Of a stretch of DNA of 64,000 nucleotides, positions 10,301 through 58,320 are shown one piece after another (positions within the stretch are counted from its first letter, which is position 1; every line of letters starts with the position of its first letter). Location of the stretch: positions 1 to 64,000 of the forward strand of contig CDRNVI010000155.1 of NCBI GenBank assembly GCA_977017575.1, given 5' to 3'. The notes beneath the pieces are model-generated. The model worked only from the letters and a program-made list of their open reading frames with translations, was not told the DNA's origin and did not search any database. Made by a program: the position numbers and the translations under genes. This DNA comes from Paramoeba atlantica (lineage: Eukaryota > Protista > Discosea).

Positions 10301-13300
10301 ATTAAATTCACACCACACAGGATTACATTCGGAGAAAAATCCTCTCAACTGATGAACAACACTTGTCTCGTGAATCAAAGGAATTCTTTTCTGTATTGAA
10401 GAAATATGCATCAATGAATGATTGTGTGAATCTCCAGTCTCCTCTTGATATTTCTCAGAGAACAAAAATTGTCCTTGATCACAGAGAATTGAGCAGCACA
10501 CCACCATGCCCGAATCCATTACAATTTTGTCTTGCGAATGAAATTTGTATTTATAATCACATCCAATGTTCACCTGCTTTTGTCCCTCGACTTTCTCAAA
10601 ATTTGTTCAAGTTATCAGAATCCTCCCCTGAATCTTGTGCTGCTGTGGCTTGTAGTGGTGAGTGTCTTGCTGAGCCATTTTGTGGTTTCTGTTTTGAGGA
10701 TGGTGCAGAGGATTCATGTCAACATGTTGAAGAAGGAGGTGTTTCTCAAGAGGAATGTGAGAATTCTCCTGGCGCTTGTCGGGCTCCAAATGGGACAATA
10801 TTTTCAAATCTCTCTGAGGAGGAGTGCAATCAAATTCAGGTTTTTGGGCCTTCTCTCTATTTTTTTTTTGGAGAGAGGTGATTTTTTGAATCAAATTTTC
10901 AAAAAAATAATCTTTGATTTTTCAGGGAGAATGTTCGATTCTTTGTCATGATGAGCAATGTGTTTCAGCATCCCAATCTGATGATGGAGTTTGCGAAGTT
11001 TTTGATGCAGAAGGAGAGGGGGAGTGTGATGGTCTTGGTGGGACATGGGTGTCTTCTTCGTGTCTTGTTGGTTCCATCACAAAATCGGAGTGTGAGGTTT
11101 GGGAATTTCTTTTTTTCTTCAAATTTCTTTTTTCTTTTTTTTGACAAGAAAAATATTTGTTTTTTAAAGGCATCTTTCCAATCATCCCAATGGATTCTTT
11201 GTGGAGAACAAGATGAAAGTTCTTGTTCTTCAAGTTCAACAGCTCCTTTCTCTTATTTGGGTTGCCAGTGGAGATCAGTTTCTCGTCCCTGTTCAGGGAA
11301 AGAAGAGTGTGAAAGTGCAGGAGAATGTTCAGATTCACATTTTCTTCATCTTTTGGGGTCGGGGGAGACAGCAGGATGTCTCTCTGCTGGGATTTTCCCT
11401 ATTTCAACATCTGAAAGTCAATTCCCACTTCCAAGTTTTGGGTTTAACGAAACTCTTGATTCCCCACTCGGGTTTCTTCTTTCTTTGGAGGCCATAGACA
11501 ATGAAGAGGATTGTCTTGAGCGGGCAGACTTTGAAGGTGCTTTTATTTGGGTGGAGGGTGCTAAGAGTGAAGAAGAATGTGTGAAGAGAGAGCTTGGGAA
11601 GTATGGTTGTAAACTTCCTCAGAGTATTTTTTCAATTTTGTTTCTCTATGATGAGGAGGAGTGTGAGTGTGCTGGTGGAACATTTTTGCCTGCTTGGAGG
11701 TTTTTATTTTCTTTTTTCGAATATATTTCAAGAAAGAGAAGGATTTAAAATCTTGTTGATGAGGAGGCTCAGCCTCATTCTCATTTTTCTCTCTCTTATT
11801 TTTAGTTGGAGTGTTGGGGAATGGAAAGTGCCAAATTTTTTGCCTCTTCAATGGATTGAAGATGAACCACTTGCTGTGTATGAATATGTTGAGTCTTTGT
11901 CTTATTTTACACTGGAAAGTTGGGTCCTTTCAAGTGTTGAGGAAAGAATTATTCTTTCTACTCTTGCTGCTTTGACCTGTGAACATAATTTTACGTCTGT
12001 GACGGCAGATTGGTTAATTTGTGATTGTTATTCAACTAGTTCAGAAGGTTTTTTGTTTTTAATTTTTTTTACTTCTCTATTTCTTTTTGTCTTAAATGAA
12101 TGATGAGGGGAAAGGCTTTTCTAAAAATTCTCTTCTCCTTAGAATGTTTAGCTCCCTCTGCATCAAAAGTAGGATTTGGGAGAGTTTGTGCAAATCTCTC
12201 ATCAACTTTGATTATTCCTTCTGCTCATATTATCTTCAATGATCAATCTATCAGGTCATATTTTTCTCTTAAGTTTCTATTTCAAAATTTCTCTTGTTGA
12301 GTTGGTTGAAACAGGGAAGGGTGTGTTGACATGGATTTGGCATTCCTTTCTCATGATGGATTCTCATTTTTGAAGAAAAAACCATCAATCACAATCCAAT
12401 TTGCAGTTCGAGAATTTTTTTTTCTTTTCTAAATTTTTTTAGTTTTAATTTTTGGGTTTGTCTCACATTCCTTTGTCTTTTTAGCAACCACAAAACTCAG
12501 GGGTGGTTGTCAATCAAAAAGGTGTGACTGTTGGCACACTTGTGGGTGATGGAGTTGAGATTTCTCTCTCTCTCAGGTTTCGTTGTTTCAATCTCAATTC
12601 ATATTAAATTCAACTCTTTTGTTTACCTCTTTCTTTTTTTCTCTCCTTATAGATCATTTGGAAACGGAATCTCTTCAATTGGAGTATTTGATATTTGTTT
12701 ATATATTCGTGAAGGAACCAATTCTTCTCTTCCAAAAAGACACAATGTTCCTGATTTTGCTCTGCTTACTGGAGAAGATTCAATGGAAGTTCAGTATTTT
12801 GAAATCAATTCTACTGTCAGTTCTGGCTATTTGTTTTGGTGTGTGTCCATTGAAGATGTTTCTGGTTTAATTAACAAGACCAAGAAGACCAAGACCAACA
12901 AAGAGGAGGAGAGCGACGACAACCAGTTCACCCTCTTTCCTGTATATCGAGTAGAAAATGGAGAAGATGAAGATGTTTATTCAACCAGATCAGTCATTTT
13001 AGCATATATTTTGGCTGGAACTTATTTAGTTTTGTTTTGCTTCTACACTTTCCTTCTTCTCTTTAATATTAAGCGATTCCAAACTTTGTTGGGAACTTTT
13101 GTACCATTTCTTTTTGTGGCTGTGTGTGCTTTTCGATCAACATACTTTTTGATGTGGGCTCAAGAGCAATTTGTTGAGCCTGATGAGGTGGTTGAGTTTG
13201 TTCTCTTTGAAACACCTTCTTTCTTTCTTTTATTCCTTTTGTTGGTGTTGATCTATTGTTGGAAATCAATTACAAAGCGAAGGTTTTTTCTTTTTTCAAA

Positions 13301-14093
13301 AGTTTTGGTTTTGGTTTGTTTTTGTCTCACTGTTAACTGAATAATAATAGACATGGAGAAATTGGCAATATCTATCAACGAGAGCTGGTATTCGGGTGTT
13401 TGGTCATTTTGTTGTATGTCGCAATTATTATTGCTGCTGTTGTTTTGGCGGAGAATGATTCTGATGATACATCAGCGTGTCCAGGACGCGCTCCAGTGGA
13501 TGATTCAAGTCTTGAAGATTCCATGAAGACATTGTCTATTGCTTATACATCTATTATTACTTTTATAACCCTTGTGTTGACTGCAATGGCGTTCTATGAA
13601 GCTCGTGATGTTTTGAAGATGATGAGAAAAGGTTCATTTTTGTTGTTGTGGTTTTTCTCTGGTCTCGTCAAAACAAAGAAAATCTAACAGTTAACTGTTC
13701 TCTCTTTCTTGTTCAGGTTTTTTCACGGCCTTCTTTTATGTTCCTGCCTCTCGATTCACCTTCGTCTTCATGATCTTTTTCTTAATCCGATGTATCCTCT
13801 TCCTGGTCATCTACACAGCCGACATCACCTCCGATATCTTCATCTTCGTCCTCCTAATGACATGCGAAGTAATCCCCTGTATTATCTTATGGCTCGAAGT
13901 TGTACGCGTAGCAGTAAAACCAATATCAGAATCACATTCTTCAAGAAGAGCGAGCAAAAATTCATCTTCCATGGGACCTGTTTCTATGGGGGTTCACTCT
14001 TTACCTCCTGTGTCTCCTCGTGCAAGTGCAAGTCATACTTTTGTTCGTAATGGTACAAGTAATCTTGCTGCGTCTCAGGCTACCAGGTTGTGA
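7301..14093 (+). CDS. Very large multi-exon membrane protein: signal peptide, long Cys-rich ectodomain, C-terminal THH1/TOM1/GPR137-like multi-TM domain
   Basis: ATG at 7301 (MSPSLLLLSFFLFCVCDVVLC), then a chain of Cys-rich exons flanked by GT-AG introns. C-terminal helices VILAYILAGTYLVLF..., VCAFRSTYFL, FVLFETPSFFLL, FFLIRCILF, MTCEVIPCIIL, followed by a Ser-rich tail and TGA at 14093. Confidence 0.7.
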
Positions 14094-14256
14094 GAAAAAA
14101 AAAATGTCTCAAAAATTGTTTGCTGTTGAAATAAAATTTTATCTATCTTTTAAAAAAAATTTTTTTTGTCTAATTATTTTATCATTTTTTTTTGACTCTT
14201 GAGAAAAAAGATGATTTTTCTTCACCAACAGTGTCACTTTATTTTTGGTTTCTTTT

Positions 14257-17200
14257 TCATCCTTTCTGTTCTTTCCTTTCATCTCTTTTCTTTCTCAACT
14301 TCCAATACTTTTTAACTGATTTGCCAATTGGAATATCATCTTCGTGTACCCACTCTTTCTCTCCTCCTTTTTTCCCTCCTTCCCAAGTTACTAAATACAA
14401 TCTATTTCCTTCTCTTCCTTTGTGATTGGACACTTTTCTAATTTTTGATTTTTCTTCTTCGAAAAAGGCTTCTTCATCAATAAAGTAACTACTCTCATCT
14501 CCTGTTGTCATATCTGTTGTATTTTCTCTTTCACTTTCTAATTCTTTCAAATCTTCTTCTTCTTCTTCTTCTTCTTCTTCTTCTTGATGTGATTCTTCTT
14601 CTTCTTCTTGATATGATTCTTCTTGATATGACTCTTCTTGAAATGATTCTTCTGGAAATGGATAATGCAGCTTTTTCTTTTTCTTTTTCTTCTTTTTTGG
14701 AGACATTATTGGGCTGTGGTAATGTCTCCTTTCTGTCTTTCTTTGGTCAGATTCTTGGTGAAACTCGTCATCATCATCTCCATCCATTGCCAAAGGATCA
14801 TAACCCCTCCAGTATTGGAGGAGAAATTGAGTATAATCTGAAATCAAAAGGGATTGGTGGGATGAGCGAGAAAAAAGAGAAAAGAAAAGAAAAGTGAACC
14901 TTTTCGAAAATAGATTAACATGAATAAGATAATAAACAACCCAACAGTTCCAAAGACAATGAGTTTCTAAAAGGAGGAGAACAAAAAAGTCAAAAAAAAA
15001 TACAAAAAGGGAAAGAGAAAGGAAAAAGCAAATCACTTGATAAGTAAAGAAGAAAAATGTCCATTCTGCTTTCGAAAGCCCTTTGACACCAGCAGGACAA
15101 GAGGGCTGTGCACACTAAAAAAGAATTTTGAGAAAATAATAATATTAAAAATGATCATCCGAATCTTAACAAGAACTAAAAAGTAATAATAAAATAATTA
15201 AAAGAAAATTATTTCTCACGTTCCTATCTTTCTATCTTTCCTTTTTCTCTCTCTCTCTTCTTTTCAATACAGGAGGAACAAACCTTGACACATTCCTCTT
15301 TATCAAATGAATTATCACAACAACCTTGGCAAAGTCTGTGGATTGAATAAGAAAAAGAGAAGGGAAAAAGAAAGAGAGAAGGGAAAAAGAAAAAGAAAAA
15401 GAAAGAAAAGAAAAAAAACACTCACTTGCATTGATAATTTGCGGTACAGCGACACTCCTTGAATTTGAAAAGTTAGAAAAGAAAAAGAAAAAATGAGAAA
15501 GAAACAAGCCAAAAGGACAGGAATGAAAGAGAAAAGAAAAGAGAAAGAAAAGAAAAGAGAAGGAAAAGAGAAAGGAAAAGAGAAAGAAAGAAGAGAGAGA
15601 GAGAGAACCTCGAGAACACAAGCATTACAAGTCTGAGAATCCTCATAGAGATGATCACAACATGCCCCACAAACATTGCATCCTCCCTCTAGACGTGGGT
15701 CACATTGGTGCTAAAAAAAGAAAGAAGAGAAAAGAGAGAAAGGGGGGAAAGAATGGGAAAGAGAAAGAGAAAGAGAAAGAAGAGAGAAGAAAAAGAGAGA
15801 AAAAGAAAATTAAAAAAAGAAAAATAAAATTATTAAAAAAAAGAATCAAAAAAAAAGAAGAGAAAAAACAAACAGGTTTTTTTCCTTGACAATTTTCTCG
15901 AACACAATCATCACAGCCAGCCTGAAAAAGAAAGAAAAGAGAAATAAGAAGAAAATAGAAAAAGTATTGTTTTCTTAACTTTTTGTTTTTCAAAGTTAAT
16001 TCTAAATTTTGATTGAATTTTGAATGGAAATAAAGAAATAAAAGGGTTTAAATTATTTTCTATTATTATTTTTTTGATTCTATTGGTTTCTTTCTTTCTT
16101 TCTTTCATTCAATTTATTCCACGACATATCATTTTCCTCTCTTCTTTTTTTAAATAAATTAAAAAAAATCAAAATCAAAAACACAACAAAAAACAAGACA
16201 AACAAACAAACAAACAAACAAAAAAAAAAAAAACCACAAACATGAGCAAGAAACCCCTGACAGCACTTATCACAAACATTACAACTCCTAGGCTCACAAA
16301 CATTCCCAACAACCCCCCCATCACCACCAGGACTAGGACTCGGAACACCCCCCAAATTTGGACTCGGACTCGGACTCGGAAACTCCTCAACTAAAAAGGG
16401 AGATGGCGCTGGACTTGGAGAAGGTGTTGGAGTTGGAATTGGTGTAGGAGTGGGAGTTGGAGTCGGAGTTGGAGTTGGTGTTGGAGTTGGTGTTGGTGAG
16501 GGAGATGGGTGGAGGGTCGGGGTCGAGGTCGGGGTCGGGGTCGGGGTCGAGGTCGGGGTCGGGGTCGGGGTTGGTGCTGGAGGCGCTGGGATTTTGGTTT
16601 CTGGGGCGGTGTAGATTGTGAGGGCCAGCTGTTTTTTGGTTGAGAGAGGAGAGAGAGAGAGAGAGAAGGAGAGGAGGGAGAGAGAGGAGGAGGAGAGGAG
16701 AGAGAGAAGGAGAGAGAGAAGGAGAGGGAAGATTTAGATTTTGTGGAAAAAAGAACAAATTTAAAAACAAACATTTTCGACTGAACCAATATCTCCTTGA
16801 ACATCATCAGCAATTTTAACAACCCAATCACCACCTTTCTGTTTTTAAAAAAATGAATCTCCCTCTTTGTAAAAGAGACAGAGAAACGAGAAGAGAAGAG
16901 AGAAAAGAGAAAGAAACAAGTGAGAAAATTCAAACCGTTTCTCCCCAGTGTCTCAGTGTTGTGAAAGTATAACGTGAATACTAGATTTATGAAATTATTT
17001 AGAAAAAGAAAAAGAAATAATATTTGTAAAAAAAAAATTCAATAAAAAATAAAAAATAATTCAATAAAAGAGAAAGAACCAATGGCTGACTAAAATCTTT
17101 TGTGGCCATTCTCTGAAAAGTCACCAAAACTCGCTGTTGGATCATATCAAAAGATTCAAAAGAAGAGAGAGGACACCCAATGATCGGCACCGAAAATTGA

Positions 17201-20200
17201 ATTGGATCAACTTCTTCAAGAGTAAAAAAGAAGACAACTTTGACACCAACAAATTTGAGTCCAATGATTTGCATCTGAGAGAGAGGGAAAGGAAAAAAAT
17301 GAATAATAAATAAATAAAAAAGCTTTTTTGAATCATAAATAAAATAAAAAGAACTTGACGAGAAAAAGAACAAGCTCCACTATTTAAAGCGACAATACCA
17401 TCTTCATTTGTCAGACCATTCACTGCACAACTATTTTTCAAAAATTGAGAAAGAAAGAAAGAGAAAGAGAGGAAGAGAGGAAGATAGAGAAAAGAAAAAG
17501 AAAAAGAAAAAGAAAAAGAAAAGAACGCTTCAGAGGAGAAAGCACAACAATCAGAAATCAAATAAAGCTTTTGAACTTCAATTGAAATTTTCTGTGAAAG
17601 AAGTAAGAAGAGAGGAAGAGAAAGATGAGAAAGAAAAGAGAGAGAGAAATAACTTGATGGTTTTCAAGAGCAGAATATGTTCTTTTATCTAAAGGAAATC
17701 CCGTTTTTTCCCATTTTTCATTTTCATTTTCCACCTTTTGAAGAGGAAGAGGAAGAAAGAAAAGAAAATTTAGAATGAACTTTTTTCTTCTTCTCTCTTT
17801 TCTTTCTCTCTCTTTATTTGAGAACAAACCTTCAAATAACTTCTATGAATATCTGTAAAGTAATATCCTCGTGCCTATTTTCAATGAATTTAATAAAGAA
17901 AGAAAAGTAAGAAGAAAAAGAGAAAGGAGTGAAGATGAGTATGAAGAAAATAAGAAAGAAAGAAAAAGAGAGAAAAGCCTCTGCAAATTGAGAAGGGGTC
18001 CCAAAAGGAGAAGAGAGAAGAAAAGGGAAAATAAGAGAGAAGTGAGAGAAGAGAGAGAGAAAACCTTGGCAAGGTGAGATGGAGTACCAAAAGGAGAATA
18101 AAGAATTACAGATAAATCTGTAATCGCTCGGTGGTCACTTGTCAACTCCACCTGTTTTTATTTATTTTTTATTTATTTTTTATTTATTTTTTATTTATTT
18201 TTTATTTTTTATTTATTCTTTTTCTTTTATTCTTTTTCTTTTATTCTTTTTCCTTTTATTCTTTTAATAAAGAATAAAATAAAAGAGAAAAAAAGTAAAA
18301 TAACCTCCACATGTTGAACATTAAATTCAGAATCACTACAAAAAGCCAATTAAAAATAATTTCAAAATTTAAATTTATCCAATTTGTATTTTTCTTTTTG
18401 TCTCTGTCATCTCTCTCTTTTTGAAAAAAGGATTAAAAATACCGAGCAGAAAATTTGAAAGAAACTCCTTTTTCGCTATCATCCGGAATTAATGTCTTCT
18501 CAGACCTACCAAAAGAGTTAAAATCAAGTGAGAGAGAAAGAGAGAAAGAAAAGAGGGAAAGAAAAGAGAAAAAAGAAAGAAAAGAGAAATAAAAAATAAT
18601 AAAAACAAAAAAAAGTGTTTTCATACCAAGTAAAAGTCTCTTTTCTCCTTTTCGACATGTCAATTGGGATGCATTTTGTTGCGGCGAGAACTGCATTTCT
18701 TCCATTTACTACCCCAAAACTAAATCCATTTTAAATTAATAATTTTAATAATTTTATTAAATAATTAAATTTATTTTGAATTTATTTTTATTTTTTACTT
18801 CCATTTAATTTATTTTTCATTTCTCCTTTTCAATTAACTTTCTTTTAACAACACAAATAAAATATTCAAAAATAAAAATAAAAAAAACAAACCCAAATCG
18901 AGAACTAACCAATCTCCCAGCTCCATTTCTTGTCCATTCATCATCTTCTGATGCACTTAATGGTCGAGCAGTCTCAATTAAAAGGGACTATAAAAGAGAG
19001 AAGAAGAAAGAGGGAAGAGAAGAAGAAAAGAAAAGAAAGAGGAGAAAGGGAGAGAGAGAAGAGAAAGATTATTAACTATTCTATTAAAAACAAAAAATAA
19101 AAGAGATAAAAAAAACCTGAACATCAAGCCAACTCAAATTTGGATTTGCCTTTTTTTTTCAAGTGGTTGAGAAAAAGAAAGGAATAAAAGAAGAGAAAGA
19201 AAAAAATGAAAGAAGAGAAAGAAAAAAATGAAAGAAGAGAAAGAAAGAGAGAAGAAAAGAAAGCAAAAAACTTGAAGCATTAAAGCGACAACTCCACTCA
19301 CCACAGCAGTCGAAGCCTATGTAATAATCAATACAAAGAAAAGAGAGGGAAAAGAAGAGGAGAGAAGAAAAGAGAGAAAAGAGAGAAAGAAAGAAGAACC
19401 TTTGGTCCAGAGAGGATAAAGTCCTCTCCACAATAATCTGTGAAAAAAGAGTGAGTCAATTAAAAAAGAAAAGCGAAGGAGGAAAAAAGTAGAAAAAGAG
19501 AAAGAGAAAAAGAGAGAGAGAGAAAAAGACCATCATAATGAACATAAGGAAGATCAGTAGGGGCAGAAACAAGATAAGCAGCACATTGTGATGTCCCACT
19601 TCCCCCTTCTCCTTTTGTATTCACATCTGATACTGTTTTTTTTTTTTTTTTGATTGGAGGAATGGGAGAGAGGGAAGAGAGGGAGAGAGGGGGAGAGAAA
19701 GAGAAGAAAGGGGAATAGGAAAATGAAAATGAGAAAAGAAAGAAAATGAAAAAAAGAAAGAAAAAAAAAAAAAAAAGAAAAAAAAAAGAAAAAAAAGAAA
19801 ATTTGAACCAGTAATAATTTCAGAAGGATTTTTATATCCATTATAATTACAATTTCCCTCCCACCCTCCTTCCTCTGCTGCAGTCAATATAATCGATCCC
19901 CTTTTTTAGAAAGAGAGCAGAGAAAGAGAGGTGAGAAAAGAAAGAGAATAATGCAAAAGGGAAGAGAGAAAGGAGAGAAAAGAGAGAGAAAAAAAATGAG
20001 TACTTTCCATCTCGTCCCATTTGAGTCATTTCAACAATCTAAAAGAAGAAATGAGATTAAAAAGAAAGGAAAAAAAAAGAAAGAAAGAGAAGAGAAGAGA
20101 GAGAGAACCGTTCTCTTCCAAGCCTCTTCAGGCTCCACTAAAATATTTGAAAAACCTATTTATTTCATAAGAGAGAAGAAAAGGGAGAGAAGAAAGAAAA

Positions 20201-21864
20201 GAGAGGAAAGAGGAGAAAGAGAAAGAGAAAAGAAAACAAACCAATAATCTCAAAATCATGAATATAAACAGAAACTTGATTTTTATGATAACTTTGAATT
20301 GAACACAAATCCAAGAAAAGAAGAAAAGAAAGAAAGAGAAAAAAGAAAGAGAGGAAAAAGAGGAGAAAGAGAAAAGAGAAACAAACCAATAATCTCAAAA
20401 TCATTAATATAAACAGAAATTTGATTTTTGTGATAACTTTGAATTAAACACAAATCATCAATTCTAACACCATCAGGAAAAGAGAGAAGTTCTAAAATCG
20501 CAATTTTTGCTGAAAAAAATAAAAAAAAAGAATCAATAAAGAAAAGGAAAATGAAAGCAACAAAAAAAATTCTTTTCGAAATTGAAAGAAAAATGTTTCT
20601 TTCTTCTTCCTCTCTTTCCTTTTCTCTCCTTCCTCTCTTTCTTCCGAAAAGAGAGAATCCCAAAATAACATTTAATTTCAACATTCTTTTTCCTGAAAAT
20701 TCTATTTTTCTCTTTTCCTTCAAATGATTTTCCTTTTCAAATTACCAGCAATGCAACTCTTTGCTTGTGCAATAGCAGTATTCTTTCCTTCTTCTTTCTC
20801 TCCCTTTTCTTTCTCTCTCTTTTTCATTTCTCACTCTTTTTCCTTTAAAGTAAAATGCAAAATTACCAGCACAATGTCAACAATACAATTTTGATTATTC
20901 TTTGTGCGACAGCAAGACTTTGTCAATGTAGTGTCTTCTTCTCTCTTTCTTTTTCTTTCCTTTTCTCTTTTCTCTCTCTTTTTTCTCCCTTTCCCTCTCT
21001 CTTTCAAAAAATGAAAATTACCAGCAGATGCAACGCCAGCAATATAATTTTGATTATTAGATTAAGCGACAGCAATACTTGTCAATGTAGTGTCTTCTTC
21101 TCTCTTTTCTCTCTTCCTTTCTTTTTCTTTCCTTTTTTCTCTTTTCTCTTTCTTTTCTATTTTTCCTCTCCCCTTCCCCTCTCTCCTTTCAAACATGAAA
21201 ATTACCAGCATACGCAACGCCAGCAATACAATTTTGATTATTAGATTGAGCGACAGCAATACTTGCCAAAGCAGTTCCTTCTTCTAAAACTCCTCCTCTT
21301 TTATTTGTTAGACTTCTCATGGAGTTGGCTTCGTCATATTGGTTTTTTAAATCTGTTTTTTTTTTGTTGAGAGAGAGAGAGAGAGAGAAAAGGGGGTTGG
21401 GAAAGAGAGAAGGTTGGGGAAGAGAAGAGAGTTCTTTGCTTTCTGATTTGATTCTAAAAGTAAGGAATAGAAAAGAAGAGGAAAACAAAGAAAGAAAAGA
21501 AGAATCATAAATTACCAGTTATATTTGAATCAACAAGAGGAGTAATTAAACCAATGACAACACCATTTCCATCATAACCTAAATCCCACGCTCCCTTAAA
21601 AAAAGAGATGAGAGAAAAGAAAGAGAGAAAAGTAAAAGAGAGAAAAGTAAAAGAGGAAAAGCAAAAGAGAAGAGAAGAAGAATAAGAGAAGAAAGAGAAA
21701 AGGAAGAAGAGAAAAACCTCAATTTGAGCAGAAGGGTAAGGAGATCTCATTGGGAGATGCCATTCTTTCTCAACCAAAGGATCATTTGGCAACGAACCAC
21801 AAACAAAACCAAAGAGAAAGAAAAAGAACAAGAGAAAGAAGGAGAAGACAATCCGTGGCCCCAT
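14257..21864 (-). CDS. Type-I membrane protein: signal peptide, inactive kexin/furin-type S8 domain, P domain, Pro/Thr linker, three Cys-rich repeats, TM, cytoplasmic acidic/NLS tail with C-terminal chromodomain
   Basis: Kexin landmarks: [103 protein letters not shown]-domain motifs [12 protein letters not shown] and [19 protein letters not shown]. Phase-consistent exons run ...EECVK|CAQPSC...TYQ|[22 protein letters not shown]|[10 protein letters not shown]... into the 14257-15036 ORF, which carries YLVTWEG...KEWVHEDDI. Confidence 0.75.
20245..20460 (-). repeat. Duplicated 3' part of a kexin-domain exon
   Basis: [24 protein letters not shown] (~20388-20460) is repeated as [24 protein letters not shown] (~20245-20310), with the same donor context. 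Confidence 0.75.
20735..21290 (-). repeat. Tandem degenerate copies of the 3' half of the kexin 'His-motif' exon within an intron
   Basis: The functional exon ends at 21206. Copies lie at ~21022-21095, ~20866-20940 and ~20735-20785 (partial). Each retains GCTG|GTAATTT; one has an in-frame TAA. Confidence 0.75.
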
Positions 21865-22200: not shown

Positions 22201-24186
22201 TCAAATTCGAAGAGATCGAGGATTTGGGTCACTGATTTTGGATTGAATATTCTCGGTTGTATTCTCGTCTGCACGAAAGAGAGCAACGTAAAATTTAGGG
22301 ATGAAGATGAAGGAAAGGGTGGCAATGGCACGGTACATTGCTTGGATACACAAAAGGATGGTGCGTCCTTTGTACTGATCCAATTCCATGGTGTAGATAA
22401 GAGGGAGGAAGATCAACTCCAGAATAGCAACATTGTAGAGAGCCAGACTGATCTCAGTTGTTTCACAGAAATACCCATGAAGTCGTCGTGTGAGATATGC
22501 CAAAACAATACCAGCACAAATCCACACACACAAATAACCCCACACTAATCCAATCCACAAGGCTTCATTCGTATCACCACAGTACAAATATTGCTCATCT
22601 ATTTCCAGGTCATCACTGGTTTCACGTGTCGCCTGGTAAGGGTCAGCCACTTGCCATGAAATTAAGATGATTAACATTCCAAGCAGACCAACTCCAATAG
22701 CTCCAAAAAGTTGGGGAATAGGAATGGCTGTGGGGAAAAACTTATGGGTCGTTCTGAACAATTTCCAAAATCGAAAGTTCTTAACCACAATAGCACTCAA
22801 CATCATCACAAATCCCAACATCTCCAGCCAAATAGGGACCATACAGACCGCATCTGTTGGCTTTTGGAGGTATGTGTAAGCCGCAGCAAACTGCATCCAC
22901 CCGCCCACGAAAATGACAACACAAAAAATGGGAGAGGCGGTGCGAATGACGGGTGTGGTGACGAAAAAGAGGAAGAAGGCCAAGTAGATGAAAGATAATA
23001 CCACACACAATGACACAATAACCATCATGGCAATGTAGAGCGCGGAGTCACTTTCCACATACACATCCACAAAATAGAAGTCACCTTCAACTGGAGTCAC
23101 ATAGTCCAGCAAGTAAGGCATGCTATTTAAGACTGATGCACACTCCTCACCCATCTCAGGTTGGTCCTCAGGAGGAATTCCTGCGAGCGCATCTTCACCA
23201 CAAAAAATGACTTCCTCTCCAGGGCCAGCAAGAAGGACACGTTCACGTTCACTGAAAAAAAGGGGCAAGATTTCTTCATCAACAATCTCACTTGGAGGTG
23301 CAATATCAACAGACTCGAAATTATTCAAACCAGCAAGGACACGTCGATCAATTTCATGACCATCAAGATAACGTTGAACAATATCGGTGTAGACCCCACC
23401 AAAGTTGAACATCGAAGATGTCAGAACTGAAGGACCCACTTTTGCACGGAAGTCATCAGTATATCCAGAAGAGTACACCTTCTCTCCTTGAGCATAAAGT
23501 TTTGCAACAATTGTGGAAGGGATAAAGTTGCCTGTGTATCCCATAATATTGTCAGCTCCCAACTGTAACAACTGTTCAGTTCCTTGTTTGTGCATTCGGT
23601 GGTCTGTAAACGAAGGCATAACAACAGTCAGGCACTCAACATTGGGATTGACTTTACGGGCTCCAAGACAGCAAGCATTGATCGACTTTGCATTCGGCAT
23701 CGCTAATGGACCAGTCAAAAATCCAAGTTTTTGAGTCTGAGACATGTGGCCTGCCACAATACCAGCTAAATATGACGCTTGATAGAGCAAGCCATCGATT
23801 GCAATTAAGTTTGGAAGATCTTCATCAAAGACAGTGGCTGGCATCTGGACGAAGAGAATATCGGGATACATTTTAGCCAAAGTGAGTGCCTCAGTGAGGA
23901 AACCAGTCGAGGTCAAAAATATGATCTTATATCCATCATTAATGAACTCTTCTGCTGTGGAGATTGTCATCTCCGGATCCCACTCGTTTGTTGTTACGAC
24001 ACTGGTAAGAATGGAGTTCTTGAGTGCTCTTGCCACATCTTGACGACCCATTTCGTGACGAAAGGACCAGGCGTGCTCCAGGGCACCGTTCAGAAAAAAA
24101 AGAATCTTCGTGATTTGTCTCCCTTCATCCTCCTGGCAGACAACGAAACCAAAACAAAGGATCCCAAACAAGAGCGCAAATTTCAT
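22201..24186 (-). CDS. Class C (family 3)-like GPCR with N-terminal BMP/PnrA-type substrate-binding domain (Dictyostelium Grl-like); intronless
   Basis: Signal peptide MKFALLFGILCFGFVVC. BMP motifs WSFRHEMGR, YQASYLAGIVAG, SSGYTDD. 7tm_3 motifs ASPIFC, IVVKNFRFWKLF, LAYLTR...FCET. Confidence 0.85.
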   Translation of the reverse strand: MKFALLFGILCFGFVVCQEDEGRQITKILFFLNGALEHAWSFRHEMGRQDVARALKNSILTSVVTTNEWDPEMTISTAEEFINDGYKIIFLTSTGFLTEALTLAKMYPDILFVQMPATVFDEDLPNLIAIDGLLYQASYLAGIVAGHMSQTQKLGFLTGPLAMPNAKSINACCLGARKVNPNVECLTVVMPSFTDHRMHKQGTEQLLQLGADNIMGYTGNFIPSTIVAKLYAQGEKVYSSGYTDDFRAKVGPSVLTSSMFNFGGVYTDIVQRYLDGHEIDRRVLAGLNNFESVDIAPPSEIVDEEILPLFFSERERVLLAGPGEEVIFCGEDALAGIPPEDQPEMGEECASVLNSMPYLLDYVTPVEGDFYFVDVYVESDSALYIAMMVIVSLCVVLSFIYLAFFLFFVTTPVIRTASPIFCVVIFVGGWMQFAAAYTYLQKPTDAVCMVPIWLEMLGFVMMLSAIVVKNFRFWKLFRTTHKFFPTAIPIPQLFGAIGVGLLGMLIILISWQVADPYQATRETSDDLEIDEQYLYCGDTNEALWIGLVWGYLCVWICAGIVLAYLTRRLHGYFCETTEISLALYNVAILELIFLPLIYTMELDQYKGRTILLCIQAMYRAIATLSFIFIPKFYVALFRADENTTENIQSKISDPNPRSLRI

Positions 24187-25129
24187 TTCCAAAAAGGAAA
24201 AACGGAAAACGGACAAGCCCGCTGTTCTCGTCCAGGACATAAAACTAAAATAAATTCGGCAATGCTTCCAAAAATGGCCCTTTTGGCTGAAACAAAAGCA
24301 AGCAAAAGTTCCAGAAAAAGGATAAATTCCCAAGTTTAGTTAATTTTTCCAAAAAAGTTTTTCGTGCAATTCTGTTTCTGAAAGAAAAAATTTTGGCAAG
24401 GAAAAGAGTGGTGAAAGAAGGAAGGTCACAAAAAAAAAGATTCCAGAATAAAACACCAATTGTTTGGTGTCGAAGGAACTTGGAGTTCAAGAATTTTTTC
24501 TCTTTTCCATCGATGAGAAAAAAAAAAGCTGGTCGGGATTTTTTCTGTTTATTTTGCGTGAGCGTCTGGCTTTTTTTTTGGTGTTTTCTGAAGGAGACGC
24601 TGGCCCAAAAGCCAAAGATTAAACCTTTTTCACCTGAAAAAGAAAAGACCAGATGAAGCAATCGAAGACTTTTCAAGAGTCGGTCTTCTCCTGTTAAAGT
24701 CTTTTTTTTTGTGACCTTGAGGTTTCATGAAGCTTCCTTATCATCAAATTAATTTTCCTCCTGTTTGCCTCATCTTTTGTTTCCGATCCTGAAGATAATT
24801 TGGTGTTGACGAAGAAAGGGAAAGCAGACGATAGAGGGTGAGATCTCACCAAACAGCTTCGTGGAGGCATTTCGATGAGTTCTTTTCAAACCACGCGATT
24901 TGTTTGAAAAGGTTAGGGTTGTTTTCAAAAAAACTATCCTCGGATCTCATTTTCTTCGTTGGGTTTTCCTTTCAAAATTTTTATTCCATCGCCAAGGGTA
25001 AAGATTGTTTGACCAAAATGTTTTGTTTCGATTGTCAACGATCTGTCTCTCCAGAGGAAGATGAACCCAACAAGAAAAGCAGATTGGAATAAGTTTTGTT
25101 GATTTTTTTGTTACTCGTATTTTTTTAAC

Positions 25130-48410: not shown

Positions 48411-50210
48411 GTTCTTTTGGTGTTCGTTTTGGCAGTTTCTCATTCCCTTTCATTGCCAGAATCAAAAACGGAGAACAAAACGAAAAAAAGTCCGATTTAT
48501 TTTTTAACCAATCAAATATTGACACGTTGGCACCATACAAAAATTCCGTAATGTAGAGGAAGAGGAAGAGGAAGAAGACTTCTTGGGTGACTTGGAAGTC
48601 GATGATTTGGAGGATGATGACTTAGAGGAAGATGATTTAGAAGGAGGTGGATTCAGAGGGTGTTTCTGATGATACCTTTCGATTTGTTCTGAGGCATCAA
48701 TTTGTGAAACATGGATCCATTCAGTGTTGGCCTTTCAGTAGTGTTTGAAATGCACTTGATAATAAAGTTCTCCATTCGAATACTTATGCTTAAGGATTTC
48801 CTTCACTTCAAAATCATAACCATCATCATCTTCAACAATCTCTTTGGGTGCTGGCTCTGAATTAACAATAGATATTTCATTTGATTCAGGATGCAGAGTA
48901 ATCTTGTACTGAACATGGAGTTTCTTTAAGTTCTGAATGTTTTGGATTTCTGAATTCTTCTCTTGTTTGAGTTCTTGAATCTGGTAACTTCCATTCTTAA
49001 GATCCTCCACAACCACATAAATCTCTTGATAATAATAGGGTCTGTACTTCTTCACAATCTCTTTTCCTTTTGATTTGTTTCTCTTCAACACTTGATCACC
49101 AACCTTCAACACAGTGTATGTTCCTTCATTTGCTTTGTCATATCATTGTTTTTATTTCACAGCCACTTTCTCTCTCTTTTCTCAAACCCAATTAATCATG
49201 CCCTCCCTCTCAGTTTGTAGCTTCTTGACATAGTCATCAATCAGTACCACTGGTTTGTTCACAGAGCCGAAGAGAGAATTGATTGGCATAATTGGATGTC
49301 TCCCAAAGTGAAGATAGAAAGGTGTGTAACCAGTTGAGGAGGAATGAGAAGTATTGAAAGCAAATTCCACAAGAGGTAAGAGAAGGTCCCAATCATCTGC
49401 ATATTTATCAACAAATGAGCAAATGATTGATTCTGTAACTTTGTGGGAACATTCAACATGGCCATTACTTTTGGAGTTGTAGGGGGCAATAAAAGTTTGT
49501 TTCATTCTGAGAAGCTGGGTCAGTTTTGCAAAAATTTGATTTGCAAATTCTGAACCATTATCTGTTACTATCTGCAAAGGCATTGAATTAACACAAACAT
49601 ACTGAAGTAAGGCTTCAGCAGAGGCTTCAGCAGAGGGATCTGGAATTGCATACAGACATATATAGTCACTAAAGTTATCAAGGATAGCCAAAATAAAAGA
49701 ATTCCCATGAGCAGTGACTTTTGGTCCCTTTGTACAATCCAGGTGGAGTAAAATTCCAGGGTAAGAAGCCATGTAAGGATTTAAATCAGATGTCAATGTC
49801 TTTGTTTTTGAGTTGATCACACAATTAAGGCAACAGTGATAGTAACCTTTGATCACAGCACTCATACCAGGAAAATAATAGGAGACAGCAATTGCATCAT
49901 AAAGTTGCTTGAACTTGTGGTGTCCAGAGATTAGATCTGAATGATAAGTGTCAAATACTGTATTCCACAAACTCTGGGGCAGAATTGCAGGTGGGAAACA
50001 ACCAGCAGCTGTAGTTTCATCCACTTTCCTCAAGATTCCAGATTCATCAACCCAGTACTTGTGAGCAGTTTGTTGGAGTGCTCAAAGATAGTGCTTCCTC
50101 TTAGGCAAGAGGCTATTAATCAAGTAGTTAATAATCATTGAGCAAAACTTATCTTTCCTTTGAGCCTGAGCAAGGTAAGGAAGTTCAACTAAAACCTGAT
50201 CAATGTCATC

Positions 50211-53200
50211 TGTGCAGATTAAGTTCTACAGGGGTTGCAAGAGAAAAGGGAAAGCACAAGTTTTTGTCAGGAAAGTTAAAAGTGGTTTACTAAGGAGGTT
50301 AAAGGTCAGGTGTGACGAAAGGAAAGGTCCGTGGAGAATTCTTTCAGGCGTGACCGTTCTGGGAAGCGGTTACTGGATCAATAAAGGTGTCCGAAGACAA
50401 TTTGAGGAATATCTTCTTTAGCGTTCTAGTTTAGCGCGTTATTTTCTTTTTCGCGTTTCTTGTTTTGTTGCGGGAGTTTGGTTGTTTGTTCGTTCGTTTA
50501 GTTTTGTTCAGAAGCAGCTGTGCATCCTCCCGGGGCTCGAAGAACGTCTAGCTTGCGTTATAAGGATTTGTAAAGCAATGGAGATGTTGCTATAAGTTTG
50601 GAATCGCATGGAAAACCCAGTGGGAAAAAAAGCCATGGTTCAGGAGTTGTCCGCAGGAGGGAGCCAATGCCGAGAGCTGGTGTGGAAGGGGCAAAAGCTC
50701 GTTGTGTGAGGAAACCCAAGAGTTCTGGGAGGAAAACCTCACTTTCTTGCAAGAGGAAGGACCATTGGAGTGTAACTCTTGGTCTGTTATTCATAATCAG
50801 CGTAACGAGTACTGGCTCGTAGCCTCCTCCCCCGAGCAGAAAAATTGGGCTGGGGTTGAGTTGGGAGGGTGTTTGTCGAAGCAGCTGCAGCTGCCTGGGG
50901 CTGTGGTAGTGGAGGGGTAACATTGTGATTTCGTTTATAGAATTCAATGAGATCAGGAGCATCGATTTCATCTGCAAGAAACCAGACTGCGTGGTCTGCT
51001 CGGAAATTTTTGTATTGAACTTTGTAATGAAGTCTTCCCTGTGGGTCGAATTTGTGAGCAAGAATTTTCTTTAATTCATAGTCACAATCATCACCCAGGT
51101 CGAAGTCATCAAATTCAATTTGTTCGTCATCCTCAGGGAGACAGACAGGTTGTTCTGTGAGTGCCTGGTTTGCAGGTTCATGATTTAATTCATATCGAAT
51201 TTTTAGTTTTTTTAATCTCATAATGTTTTCAGTTCGCGGAAGTTCTTCCCATTTGAGATCTTGGATCGTATATGTTCCGTTGGAATGGATACCGGTGACC
51301 TTGTAGATTTTTCGGTAGAAAAGTGGTCGGTATTTCTTTCCTATGGAGCTGTCTTTGTCATCCTTTGCGAGGAGGACAAAATCTCCAAGGTTCAGCATTT
51401 TAATCATTGTGTGATGGGTTTCATCATAGCGATCTTTGTAAAGGTTTGCTGCTTTTTGTTTTTGGTCTTTGACCCAAGCAAATACTATATCTTGTTGAGT
51501 TTGTAGTGTTTTAACATACTCATGTGCTGTTGTAACAGGACGGTATGCTGTGTCGTACAAAGCCTCAATGGGTAAGACTGGATGTCTTCCATAGAAAAGA
51601 AAGAATGGCGTATAATTTGTAACTGAGGATTCAGATGTGTTGTATGCGAATTCTAAGAGCGGGATCAGCAGGTTCCAATCATCTTTGAAGTCATTGATGA
51701 AAGCACAGATCATTGTTTTGATCACTCGATGTGTTTCTTCGACTTTTCCATTACTTTGCGAATGGAGAGGGCAAATCAAGGTGTGTTTGATTCCAAGCAA
51801 ATGAATCAGGTCAGCAATTAATTCATTTGCAAATTCTCTTCCATTATCAGTAATGATTTTTAAAGGCATTGAATGTAAGCAAACATATTTGAAGAGCGAT
51901 GATGCAGATGTATTAGCATCAGGTTGAGGGATGGCATATAAGCGGAGATATCCCATAAAGATGTCAACAACTGCAAGGATGTGTGAATTTCCTCGAATTG
52001 TTCTGTTTGGTCCTGGGGTGCAGTCAATCTGGATTACCAGGCCAGGGTATTGTATGTTGCGGGTTGGATTTAATTCTGCGCGCAATTGGGCAGTTCTGGT
52101 TGTTATTTGGCATTCCAAGCAACGGTTACAATATGCTTTAATGTAGGTATACATTTGTTCAAAATAGAATGAATCTCGAATAACTTTGTAAAGTTTTTCG
52201 AATTTTCGGTGTCCTCCTGTGGGAGAGTTATGACTGATGTCAATTACTTCATCCCAGAGAGCTTTGGGGAGAACTGCAGGTGGCAGTCCTTTTTCTATTG
52301 GGAACATCTCATCGATTTTTCGAAGGATGCCTTGGTCGTCAACCCAATATTTGTGAGATTGTGTTTGCAGGTATTTGAGAGCTGATTTTCTTCTAGGAAG
52401 TGTCTCAAATTGAAGATAATTGATTAATTTTAAACAGTGTTTGTCTTCCCGTTGCATTCGAGCAAGTCGTGAAAGATTAACTGGTTGGTCAATTTCTTCT
52501 GAAAAGGTGTCCCCCCCCTCGCTTGTGGAGGCTTCTTGAAGAAGAAGGAGGTCAGGTCCTGAATTTTCAATTGTTCTTATTTCAGGAATATGTGCATTTT
52601 GTTCCTCAAGGAAGTCTAATCTTTGTAAAAGGTCAGATTGTTTGTCCAGAGATTTGTTGGTTTCACTGTTTCCAGTTTTGACTGCTGTCTCAACCATATC
52701 TTTAAAGATGTTTGTTATCTCATCAGTTTCTGTTTCAGTGTCATATGTAGCATAATGACGGCTGAGGGCATCTGGAATTGCCATTAGTTTGCCTGGTTTG
52801 TGTATAACACGGACGTTATACTGCAGGATTCTTGCGATCCAGTCACAGAGCATTTTGTGATTGGGCATGTGTTCAGTTGCGTTTATTATGTCAGAGAGAC
52901 TGCTGCAATCGCAGTATACGATTGGGTCGCGTCCGTAAACATAATATTTGAATGTGTTGAGTGACCAAAGAATTCCAAGACCTTCACGGACTGGATTTGT
53001 GTATTTTCTTTGTGTCTCAGTAAGCGCATGAGATGCATACTCAACAACTCGGTGATTACCATTCTCATCTAGTTGTGTGAGGATGGCTCCAAGGCCAGTT
53101 TTGCTTGCGTCTACATGGATGTAGAATTGTTTTGAGAGATTGGGGTGAGCCATGCATGTCTCATCAGTAAGCATTTCTTTTAACAATTCAATTTCATTGA

Positions 53201-56200
53201 TTGCTTTTTTTGTCAATTTAAATGATTTGTTATCCAGTTGGGCTGCTTTTCGAAGATTTGCGGTTAATGCTGAAAGCCTTGGTATAAATCTTCTGAGCCA
53301 TGATGTCATGCCTAAGAATCTGCTCACCTCTTTTGGTGTTCTTGGCAGTGGATAGTCTTTGATTGCTTTGACTTTTTTGGGATTAGGCGATAATCCATCT
53401 TTTGATGCAACAAACCCAAGTATTTCGAATGTGGGTCTGCAAAAGGAGCATTTTGAGGGTTGTAAGATGAGATTGTGATCTCTCAATCTTGTGAGGATTT
53501 GTTCAAGGTGCTTGATATGATCCTCAAATGATGTACTGAAAGCGAGTATATCATCAAGATAAGCAAAACAGCATATCCATAGGAGACCATTTAGAACAGC
53601 CTCTATGAATCGTTGTTGCGTTGGGGGTGCGTTGCATAACCCGAATGGCATGGAAAGAAATTCCCAGAGGCCGTATTTGCTTGTAAAAGCTGTTTTTTCG
53701 ATGTCATTCGGATGGATTGGAATTGACCAGAATGCGTCAGTGAGATCAATTGTTGAGAAATAAGAAGCATTCCCCAATACTGCAAGTATTTCATCCATTT
53801 TTGGAAGTGGGTATGAATCTTTCTTTGTCACTTTGTTAAGTGCTCTAAAATCAATGCAAAATCTGATTTTTCCATTTTTCTTATCAGCTAATAAAATGGG
53901 TGAAGCCCAAGGCGATTTTGATGGTCTAATAACTTTGCGAAGTGCCATCTTATTGATGTGTTGCCAGATGATATGATCTTCAACTGGACTTGTCCTGCGA
54001 GGATTATGTTTAATTGGTGGACCCTCAACCTCTATTGTATGAGAGGTAGAGGTTGTTCTTTCGAGAGGTCCTTCTCTTTTTTCTTTACTCCAAAGATCTT
54101 TGAAAGAGTGGAGCAGAGTTGCTAATTTTTCTTTTTGAACAGCTGTCAAATTTGTTGAGTCGATTTTGAACTCATCATAAACTTGTTGAAGTTCTGGATT
54201 CCGAGTTTGCGGGGAATCAGATTCATCAGTGGGCTTTTGGGAATCTGCCAGTTTTGCTGCAAGCATTTGAATAACTGGTTCTTCGCCAATGCCATCGAAT
54301 TGTTTGTTTTTAATAAAGGGTTTGTTGTCCTTTTGGAGTTGTTTTGGATAGATTGGTTCTGTTTTCTGCCAATTGCAATTGGGTGTTTTGTGTTTTTGTT
54401 CCGGTTTTTTCGGTGGAGAAGGGGTTTCCTTCTTGAAATTAAATTTTGTTTCCGTAATAGGATTTTTTGTGAGCTCAATGAGCTCTGTATCAGCCACATC
54501 TTGTTCGTTGACCATGTAGACTTTTCCAAGCACGGCTTTGTCTGGTATGGTAACGGTTTGTGCTGTTGGATTTGCTACCAACAGTGTGATTTCTCCATCA
54601 CTGCGGATGTCCACAAGTCCAGGAAAAGCCAGCAGCTTTCCACCTCCAGTGACTATCGGTATAAAGAATCCTTGTGGCGATGTGATAGGTCTAACTAATT
54701 TGAGTGTTATTGTTTTTAAAGCTCTTGGCGGACACTTTGCCCTCACAGCTTGGGCGTGAAGTAATCCTGCATGACCAAAGATCTTTAAATGCTCAAGCGC
54801 AAGTGGATCCATCTGATTAGAGAGATCTGAGGGGGGGTTTGCTTGTGTTTGGAATTTACCCCTGTAAGTTATGGTGTTGTCACTTGGATTATATGCAATT
54901 CGCATGCGATGCGAGGTTGGTCGACCGATTAAGCATTGAACTGGCAAGTGATCAACAATGAGAAACCATAACTTAGCAGTGCATTCCCCAAATTGAAATG
55001 TGGTTGCAATTGCCTGCTTAGCGAGAGTTTGGGTTGAATTTCCCATTGCAATGCGGAATGGAGTTTCAAGTTCTCTGATTTCCTCAGTTTTGAATCCATG
55101 TTTTTGCGTTAATTCTCGGCTAATAGCATTGAGTCCTGCCCCGGTATCAAGGCAGGTGACCGTTTGGAGGCCTCCCACAGTTGCTTGAAATTCCAGCGGC
55201 GACCCAATTATTGCTGTGACCTCATCAGCTTTTTGTGGATGGGCGTTTTGGGTTGGAAGATGCTGCAACAGTTGGAATTCTGCTTCGCAGGGAGCAGATG
55301 CAGGTGCCTGATGGGCTGTTCTCTCAATCATTCCACAGCGCGTTTTGTGTTCTTTGCAAAAAGACGATTTGAGAGATGTTTGAGCGTGAGGGATTTCCTT
55401 TTCTGATTCACAACCGTCAAGTTTGTACGACACGGTCTGACATTGTTTATCACAAGGAGGAATTCTCTCATCAGTCTCAATATTAATAAAAGCAGCGGGG
55501 TAATTTTGGAAAGGTTTATTAGCATTACCTTGTTGAATAGCAGGTTGTGCTTGAGCAACAGTTTGTTGTTGTTGTGGAGGCGAAGCAGCAGGTTGTGTGG
55601 CTGCTTTTTGGAGGTGTGGGGTCAAAGCAGCCAGTAACTTTGGAACAAATGAGTTGATCATTTGCTCTTCAGTTCGTGGTTTCTTTGTGGGGGGTTCCCC
55701 AGTATTGCGAGGAGGTTTGTGAGGATTGTTCCCGCGAGCATTTGGGTTTCCACGTGGATTGTGTGGTGGTTGTTTGTACCTTCTCTTTGATGGAGGTGGT
55801 TCATTACCAGCTCGCAGAGCCGCAATCACTCGACAATCTTTGTCAGCATGGGTGATATTGAATCCATGAATGGAGCAGCAATAGACAAAAGAAGCGTTTG
55901 TCAAGTTTGGAGTTTTGTTAAAACAGGTAAATTGTTCACGGTATCCGAGAACTCGAGGGCAGTTCAGGGAGGAGTGATCAGTACTGGCGCAAGCCAAACA
56001 CATTGTCTGCTGCTGCAGATCTTGTGCCGCATCTCTGAATTCCTGATTGTGAGGGTCCAGGCGGAGTATAGGTGTGGGTGAAGGAGTGGTATTGGAGCGG
56101 ATGAAAGGATATTTTGGTTGGCTCTTGCATGAGATAGCTGTTTCTTCAGGTGGTTGATCAGGTGATAACCTCTTGACCGCTTGCCAGGCTTCTGAGAAAG

Positions 56201-57180: not shown

Positions 57181-58320
57181 CATCCATATCCGCTTCAACA
57201 TTCTCAGAACTTTCTTTTGCTGTGGAAAGTGGCAGAGGCAGTGATCAAATAGGAGGAATGTCACAAATTTCCGGCTCACTGATTAATTCAATTTTTTCCA
57301 AAATGTTGTTTTGTCTTGAGAGGATATGGGTTTTTCCTGAAGAAGATTGTCCCAAATCCACCAACTCTTCAAACCAATGAGTCACATAATCCTTTGAAGT
57401 GGCCTTATCATGATATCCAACATACTGGTGGCTTAGAGCATCAGGGATTGTCATCAACTTTCCAGGTTTGTGAATGACCTTTGAGTGATATTCTAGAATT
57501 CGAGCAACCCAATCACACAGCATATCATGGTTCAGTACTTTCTGTTGACCTGTTTTAAACACAGATTTGAGAGATTCACAATCACAGAACATAATAGGAT
57601 TTCGACCATGGACATAATACTTGAAGTTGTTTAATGCCCACAGGATTCCAAGGCCCTCCTGCAGAGGATTAGTGTACTTCTGCTGTGTCTCTATGAGTGT
57701 TTGAGAAGCATACTCAATAACTTGGTGGTGACCATCTTGATCCATCTGAGTGAGAATCACTCTAAGACCAAGCTTGCTGGCATCAACATGGATAAAAAAT
57801 TCCTTTGAGAAGTCAGGATGGGCCATACAGGTTTCAGATGTCAAGAGCTCCTTTAAGAGATATATCTCCTTGATGGATTCTTGGGATAGCAAAAACTTCT
57901 TTGGATCCATCACTTTGGCTTTTCTCAAGTGTGTTGTTAAACTGAATGAACGAGGGATAAACTGTTTTAACCAAGTAACCATTTTCAAAAATCTCTCAAC
58001 TTCCTTTGGAGTAGTCAGAAGTGGGTAATTCTGAATTGCCTCAACTTTTTTCAGATTTGGCTTCAAACCATCCTTCGTTGTGATAAATCCAAGAATTTCA
58101 AAATTTGGCTTGCAAAACAAGCACTTTGCTGGTTGGAGCATCAAATTATTGTCCCTCAATCTTTGGAAAATTTTTGTCAGATCAGCCAGATGTTGTTCAA
58201 ACATTGAGCTGTAACAAAGGATGTCATCAATGTAGGCAAAACAACATTGCCAAACCAAACTGCTCAAGACCATTTTAATAAACTATTGTTGTGTTGCTGG
58301 AGTGTTACATAACCCAAAAG

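Follow-up and report, generated by a model that had tools for sequence, protein, structure and literature searches.

Furin and yeast Kex2, members of the S8B family, are type I membrane proteins. In both, an S8 domain is followed by a P domain, then by one transmembrane (TM) helix and finally, on the cytosolic side, by a tail that bears an acidic cluster and tyrosine motifs. The TM helix and the acidic tail are found in Kex2 as in furin; just before the membrane, furin has a Cys-rich region whereas Kex2 has a Ser/Thr-rich linker. In furin, the acidic cluster of the cytosolic domain acts together with other trafficking signals to direct cycling between the trans-Golgi network and the endosomes (PMC1424221). 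The present analysis concerns a gene with this layout in Paramoeba atlantica, located on contig CDRNVI010000155.1 (assembly GCA_977017575.1) in a stretch of 64,000 nucleotides, referred to below as the window. On the minus strand, 21864..14257, a model built from the sequence contains 31 exons and a single open reading frame (ORF) of 1039 residues, with an ATG at 21864, a TGA stop at 14259..14257 and only GT-AG introns. The predicted protein comprises a signal peptide, a catalytically dead S8 domain, a P domain, a Pro/Thr linker, a region with 23 Cys and a single TM helix with RK directly behind it; the cytosolic tail, of 195 residues, ends in a chromodomain. With a probability of roughly 0.55, we regard it as the product of a single lineage-specific chimeric gene. 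In this reading, low-complexity runs and a transposon-type, cage-deficient chromodomain would have been added to the sorting tail of a dead, furin-like type I membrane protein.

Three other systems invite comparison with this tail. The chromodomains of chromoviral (Ty3/gypsy) integrases include a group II, in which the first and third residues of the defined aromatic cage are missing, and a basic stretch resembling a nuclear localization signal (NLS) stands upstream of the chromodomain in these integrases (PMC3605345). The chromodomains of cpSRP43, a soluble protein of plastids that also has ankyrin repeats, provide a precedent for the binding of basic peptide tails, and not histones, in membrane-protein targeting. 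Finally, Notch, SREBP and ATF6 resemble the Paramoeba protein in topology only: each has a TM anchor and, on the cytosolic side, a basic run next to a module that could act in the nucleus.

Ectodomain, terminal junctions and cytosolic tail

The ectodomain was compared with known families exon by exon. Subtilisin-like proteases were the best solved match of exon 2 (E 0.0018), with a Thr aligned to the catalytic Asp (21552..21529). In exon 3, a sub-threshold Pfam match to Peptidase_S8 (E 0.027) runs across the His motif, where EGTALAS stands against the kexin motif HGTRCAG and, by direct reading of the model, His is replaced by Glu (21284..21261). Exon 7 matched only yeast Kexin (1ot5) among solved structures; since its AEEGG aligns to the Kexin SGNGG, the oxyanion Asn is replaced by Glu (19884..19864). 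The sequence SGPKAST of exons 9-11 was set against the Kex2 counterpart, GGTSAAAP...ANPNLTWRDVQ, and here, again by direct reading, Ser is replaced by Lys (19414..19305). Furin (1p8j) was the best solved match of exon 12, and exon 16, a piece of 29 residues, matched Pfam P_proprotein with an E of 0.005 and 17.3 bits, under the cut-off of 21. Neither exon 3 nor exon 16 found a match in the PDB. These exon matches, obtained with pieces of only 26-48 residues, are singly weak, yet they are colinear and indicate the same family throughout.

From these comparisons, the protein appears to have a subtilase fold with kexin-type motifs, followed by a P (homo-B) domain. The catalytic Asp-His-Ser triad and the oxyanion Asn are all four replaced, and the protein is predicted to be inactive. 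The S8 domain corresponds to exons 1-13 (18627..21864, minus strand as for all features of this gene), on the basis of the exon-level matches and of Pfam Peptidase_S8. It is preceded by a signal peptide that includes the start codon (residues 1-23, 21796..21864); within residues 1-28, hydrophobicity rises to a maximum of 2.65. No N-terminal inhibitor/chaperone propeptide is present, because the catalytic domain, which starts with DPL..EWHL, begins three residues past the signal peptide. The P domain (16599..18505, exons 14-24, ending at the start of exon 24) was delimited with the Pfam match of exon 16 and the motif GDWVVKI...LALTIY. A linker rich in Pro, Thr and Ser, within exon 24 (16314..16598), and a Cys-rich region, with 23 Cys between residues 702 and 816 in exons 24-29 (15088..16307), were identified by reading of the sequence. 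The latter lies before the TM helix as in furin. The protein differs from furin and Kex2 in the lack of a propeptide, in the replacement of Asp, His, Asn and Ser, in a possible insert of 128 residues in the P domain and in its tail.

Towards the end of the gene, a Cys-rich exon (15335..15284) and its intron (15283..15106) precede an exon at 15105..15037, for which an in-frame alternative acceptor exists at 15114, and a further intron (15036..14967). The TM exon (14966..14900) contains the single helix at 14963..14907 (hydrophobicity 2.73), followed by RK, and ends in phase 1. The last intron (14899..14838) separates it from the last exon (14837..14257). These three terminal introns are all GT-AG and their phases are compatible. 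In the last exon the joined frame is the sole open one, the other two frames containing several stops. A position matrix for donors was built from those introns of the same gene that have kexin homology on both sides. With this matrix a score of 8.3 is obtained for the last donor, AAG|GTTCAC, which places it high among the gene's own donors, and between 15340 and 14700 (15340..14700) there are only two strong donors, this one and the donor at 15283 used in the model. C+T makes up 82% of the last intron, which has 62 nucleotides, and 30% of the last exon. The interval from the TM exon to the tail lacks an AATAAA; the final stop is followed by one, about 17 nucleotides away, in a short 3' region (14095..14256). 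Since the spacer is intron-like and leaves no space for a separate promoter, we argue for one mRNA that reaches the tail.

The tail has a net charge of -17. Its juxtamembrane part contains two motifs of the YxxPhi form, YTQF (14835..14824) and YDPL (14802..14791), and the acidic cluster DGDDDDE (14784..14764), and by analogy these elements would suit a furin-like trafficking role. The start of the last exon resembles a normal convertase tail, and on this ground we argue that the exon belongs to the dead-kexin gene. A Pro followed by nine Lys (14700..14668) and a Glu-rich run (14652..14551) come next, both found by reading of the sequence, and the chromodomain occupies 14287..14451. The novel part of the tail is the distal one only, that is, the lysine run and the chromodomain, the low-complexity Lys and Glu runs making the tail longer. 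Unlike those of furin and Kex2, this tail reaches about 195 residues and combines runs of Lys and of Glu with a chromodomain at its end, and we know of no described convertase with such a combination.

An initial annotation of this DNA had described a dead-kexin ectodomain, splice phases consistent from the Cys-rich repeats to the last exon, and a single frame running through the TM helix with its RK, the acidic tail, the lysine run and a C-terminal chromodomain. These observations are confirmed: exons 2, 7 and 12 match a subtilisin-like protease, Kexin and furin, respectively, the four catalytic positions are replaced, the three GT-AG junctions are read directly close to where they had been placed, and only the joined frame is open. 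The interpretation that accompanied them is partly supported, as discussed below.

The terminal chromodomain and its relatives

With Pfam, the end of the tail matches the chromodomain family PF00385 over profile positions 4-52 of 53, with an E of 0.011; its 16.1 bits fall short of the cut-off of 25.1. An exhaustive HMMER search of 1.84 billion cluster representatives recovered, besides the ORF itself, only two matches (E ~6e-4). One is a protein of Lichtheimia ornata with the domains rve, Integrase_H2C2, SH3_Tf2-1 and a C-terminal Chromo, that is, a fragment of a chromoviral (Ty3/gypsy) integrase. The other is a chromo ORF of 76 residues from a metagenome contig, probably truncated because it starts at position 4 of that contig. 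In pairwise BLASTP comparisons with these two true chromodomains, E values of 1e-10 and 3e-12 were obtained, with 37% and 36% identity, respectively. A language-model search, whose scores serve as leads only, pointed mostly to small fungal clusters of chromodomains.

An AlphaFold model calculated from an input of four sequences (mean predicted local distance difference test score, pLDDT, of 67) has strands at residues 20-27, 34-39 and 48-52 and a helix at 60-78, and so predicts the three-stranded sheet and the C-terminal helix of a chromodomain. Compared with the PDB by Foldseek, all 50 matches listed belong to the chromodomain family, with probabilities of 0.96-1.00 and E values of 0.02-0.2; the families among them are cpSRP43, CBX, SUV39H1, HP1, MPP8 and Rhino, one of the matches being the Rhino chromoshadow domain. 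The chromodomains of cpSRP43 (3ui2, 5e4w) are among the best fold matches listed, and the Foldseek scores do not separate cpSRP43 from HP1 and CBX. Unlike the tail, cpSRP43 is soluble and carries its chromodomains together with ankyrin repeats. We conclude that the end of the tail is a genuine chromodomain, though a weak one by Pfam.

Alignment and the Pfam register agree on the residues of the Tyr-Trp-Tyr aromatic cage. The central Trp alone is kept, the first position being occupied by Ser and the third by Lys or Gly. A methyl-lysine cage of the HP1/Polycomb type appears from these residues to be absent. As judged from sequence, the domain most resembles the chromodomains at the C-terminus of Ty3/gypsy (chromovirus) integrases, and a descent from such a transposon would be plausible. 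With these integrase chromodomains, which are its best sequence relatives, and especially with those of group II, it shares the position at the extreme C-terminus before the stop, the missing first and third cage aromatics and the basic run upstream. It differs from them in that no integrase, reverse transcriptase (RT) or long terminal repeat (LTR) is attached to it, and in its fusion to a membrane protein.

A Ty3/gypsy chromovirus that appears to be intact is also present in the window, at 50787-56915 on the minus strand, with a single gag-pol ORF of 2042 residues, whose own C-terminal Chromo scores 29.9 bits; source material for a capture therefore exists in the genome. Older pol fragments lie beside this resident element, at 48660-49958 and 57416-58366. 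A tblastn search with a chromoviral pol fragment of 958 residues found full pol copies at 48.6-58.4 kb and, at the dead-kexin locus, the chromodomain alone.

Structure of the gene and neighbouring sequences

The surroundings of the gene are eukaryotic DNA, low in GC and rich in introns. The donors of the dead-kexin gene are mostly GTT(T/C), and most of its introns have 60-250 nucleotides with 70-93% C+T on the sense strand. In myxogastrid genes, numerous short introns composed of pyrimidine-rich repeats with flanking splice signals have been described (PMC4758236), and the intron type observed here agrees with that description.

The least certain part of the gene model is in the P domain. Four candidate exons in phase 0, exons 18-21 (17734..17080), would place about 128 residues between HLAK...YLK and YSRYTF. 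They have no family match in Pfam and no homology support, and since all are in phase 0 they can be skipped without loss of the frame. The piece of 65 residues at 17274..17080 has a coding-like composition. The uncertainty of this insert leaves the tail finding unaffected.

Two introns contain partial copies of the preceding exons. In intron 3 (20780-21290, minus strand), the 3' end of exon 3 and the start of the intron are repeated in tandem with a period of ~184 nucleotides and ~79% identity, and the exon copies hold stops or frameshifts. In intron 4 (20230-20345, minus strand), the end of exon 4 occurs once more together with its donor; this copy is open and has no AG acceptor. These copies represent duplicated 5' splice sites within introns.

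Upstream, a single-exon gene for a class C G protein-coupled receptor with a bacterial-type, Bmp/PnrA-like ligand-binding domain is located at 22201-24333 on the minus strand (7tm_3 E 2e-42, Bmp E 7e-24). It ends 337 nucleotides upstream of the dead-kexin start codon, and the nearest Atlas cluster is composed mostly of Evosea. Judged by this cluster and by the intron type alone, the host would probably be placed among amoebozoans of the myxogastrid kind. On the other side, convergent with the dead-kexin gene, the plus strand contains, at 12531-14093, ORFs that encode numerous hydrophobic stretches and match no Pfam family. The distance from the stop of the dead-kexin gene to the stop of the last long ORF of this neighbour is 163 nucleotides, which leaves no space for a further exon or an LTR.

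Rival readings of the locus and their meaning

Several observations weigh against a single chimeric gene. The splicing of the mRNA as modelled is deduced from DNA sequence. The phase match at the last junction, taken alone, is an event expected about once in three, and a GAA- and AAG-rich sequence easily stays open. At any length, no transcript-derived protein with the dead-kexin tail occurs in the protein collections, and no orthologue or paralogue with this tail was detected beyond a second assembly of the same species. The searches for the tail comprised a word-indexed search with 192 residues, searches with the 80-residue chromo part and with the first 60 residues, the exhaustive HMMER search and the JGI metagenome contigs. 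The chromo part gave no candidates in the word-indexed search, the first 60 residues, intended for short transcript-derived fragments, had no match, the JGI metagenome contigs contained no dead-kexin tail, and an exact look-up of the 259-residue unspliced ORF of the window returned nothing on record. A literature search on membrane-tethered chromodomains and on amoebozoan kexin pseudoproteases yielded nothing relevant. As to the transposon origin, it draws on two weak library matches (E ~6e-4), and no remnants of an integrase, RT or LTR flank the tail chromodomain. A copy taken from the chromovirus of the window was considered and rejected (22% identity, E 0.12). From the distance to the resident chromovirus and the lack of flanking remnants it follows that a capture, if there was any, was not recent; in spite of this divergence the frame of the chromodomain is still open and the domain is predicted to fold.

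The lack of a spliced product in the protein collections would also be expected if the chromo ORF were not joined to the gene. It would then be either a transposon relic in the 3' untranslated region (UTR), the last intron being retained, or an independent small gene with Met 14787 as its start. Retention of this intron leads to a stop 20 codons further on, which would give a normal short tail, and the transposon-like character of the chromodomain fits a relic. However, the spacer has a strong donor, an ordinary acceptor and the intron composition typical of the gene. Over the 50 nucleotides from the acceptor to Met 14787 the frame stays open and codes for the sorting-like motifs YTQF and YDPL, a separate promoter would have just the 62-nucleotide intron to occupy, and the domain is too diverged from known elements for a recent relic, yet open and predicted to fold. 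We consider this explanation doubtful, although it deserves to be kept in mind. Decay of the whole locus, as a non-functional member of a fast-turnover pseudoprotease family in which the intact frame is transient, appears to us improbable. The loss of every catalytic residue, the broken pseudo-exon copies of the ends of exons 3 and 4 in introns 3 and 4 and the exons 18-21 without homology support are what such a history would leave. On the other hand, the frame of 1039 codons, its 31 exons and the canonical splice sites are intact in two assemblies, the second one (L001, >99% identical) retaining the whole frame with the same tail ORF (P0001). Four of the seven exon single-nucleotide polymorphisms (SNPs) between the assemblies are synonymous, against about one quarter expected by chance, and in the tail exon the two differences are a synonymous SNP, located in the first chromo strand, and the insertion of a GAA that keeps the frame. 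This pattern is a weak hint of constraint. Moreover, in one RNA-labelled run among five runs, 17% of the sampled words of 14100..20050 are present, which is compatible with partial exon coverage.

The initial annotation had read the protein as a Notch-like architecture with a chromatin reader on its cytosolic side. According to this proposal, the protein would be a surface receptor whose tail, bearing the NLS-like lysine run and the chromodomain, is cut at or in the membrane and moves to the nucleus to act on chromatin, as in the regulated proteolysis of Notch and SREBP. It is true that the TM helix with its inner RK, the nine Lys and the chromo fold share one frame, and that the nuclear-acting chromoviral integrases have a comparable basic NLS-like stretch upstream of the chromodomain (PMC3605345). 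The succession of S8, P, Cys-rich region, TM helix and acidic tail is nevertheless the standard layout of furin and Kex2, which already accounts for the ectodomain, the membrane helix and the acidic tail (PMC1424221). Nor does the chromatin-reader role hold up well: only one of the three aromatic-cage residues is kept, the nearest relatives are integrase-linked transposon chromodomains, and chromodomains also act outside chromatin, cpSRP43 being among the best fold matches listed. Unlike Notch, SREBP and ATF6, the tail has no cleavage determinants and no DNA-binding or activation domain; neither a cleavage motif nor an associated protease is readable from the sequence. The search for orthologues with the same domain combination, which the annotation had suggested, found no relative with this tail among the 1.84 billion representatives or the JGI contigs. 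The sequence speaks neither for nor against proteolytic release as such. Release of the tail to chromatin is unlikely, and we give this explanation a low probability. A bolder version, in which a dead-protease receptor with a releasable transposon-derived chromodomain and a lysine NLS would form a Notch/SREBP-like pathway evolved independently in an amoebozoan, seems to us very improbable.

If the gene is a single chimera, as we favour, its body would be a member of a catalytically dead kexin/furin-like family with the canonical furin/Kex2 layout. The function that we infer for it has several parts. The ectodomain may serve as a non-catalytic binding module, and the juxtamembrane motifs would direct trafficking between endosomes and the Golgi, as in furin. 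The tail would have been lengthened by Lys and Glu runs, with, at its end, a chromodomain descended from, or most like, that of a Ty3/gypsy integrase. Deficient in its cage, this domain could mediate contacts with other proteins on the cytosolic side, comparable to the chromodomains of cpSRP43, or be a tolerated passenger.

This architecture, in which a furin-like pseudoenzyme bears a chromo fold on its cytosolic tail, was found nowhere else among the 1.84 billion representatives. Were the ORF not expressed as a fusion, the chromodomain would simply be what is left of a transposon in a 3' UTR. An expressed fusion would show clearly that a membrane protein of the host has captured a retrotransposon chromodomain, and it would offer a tractable example both of the recruitment of a transposon domain and of binding by a cage-less chromodomain outside chromatin.

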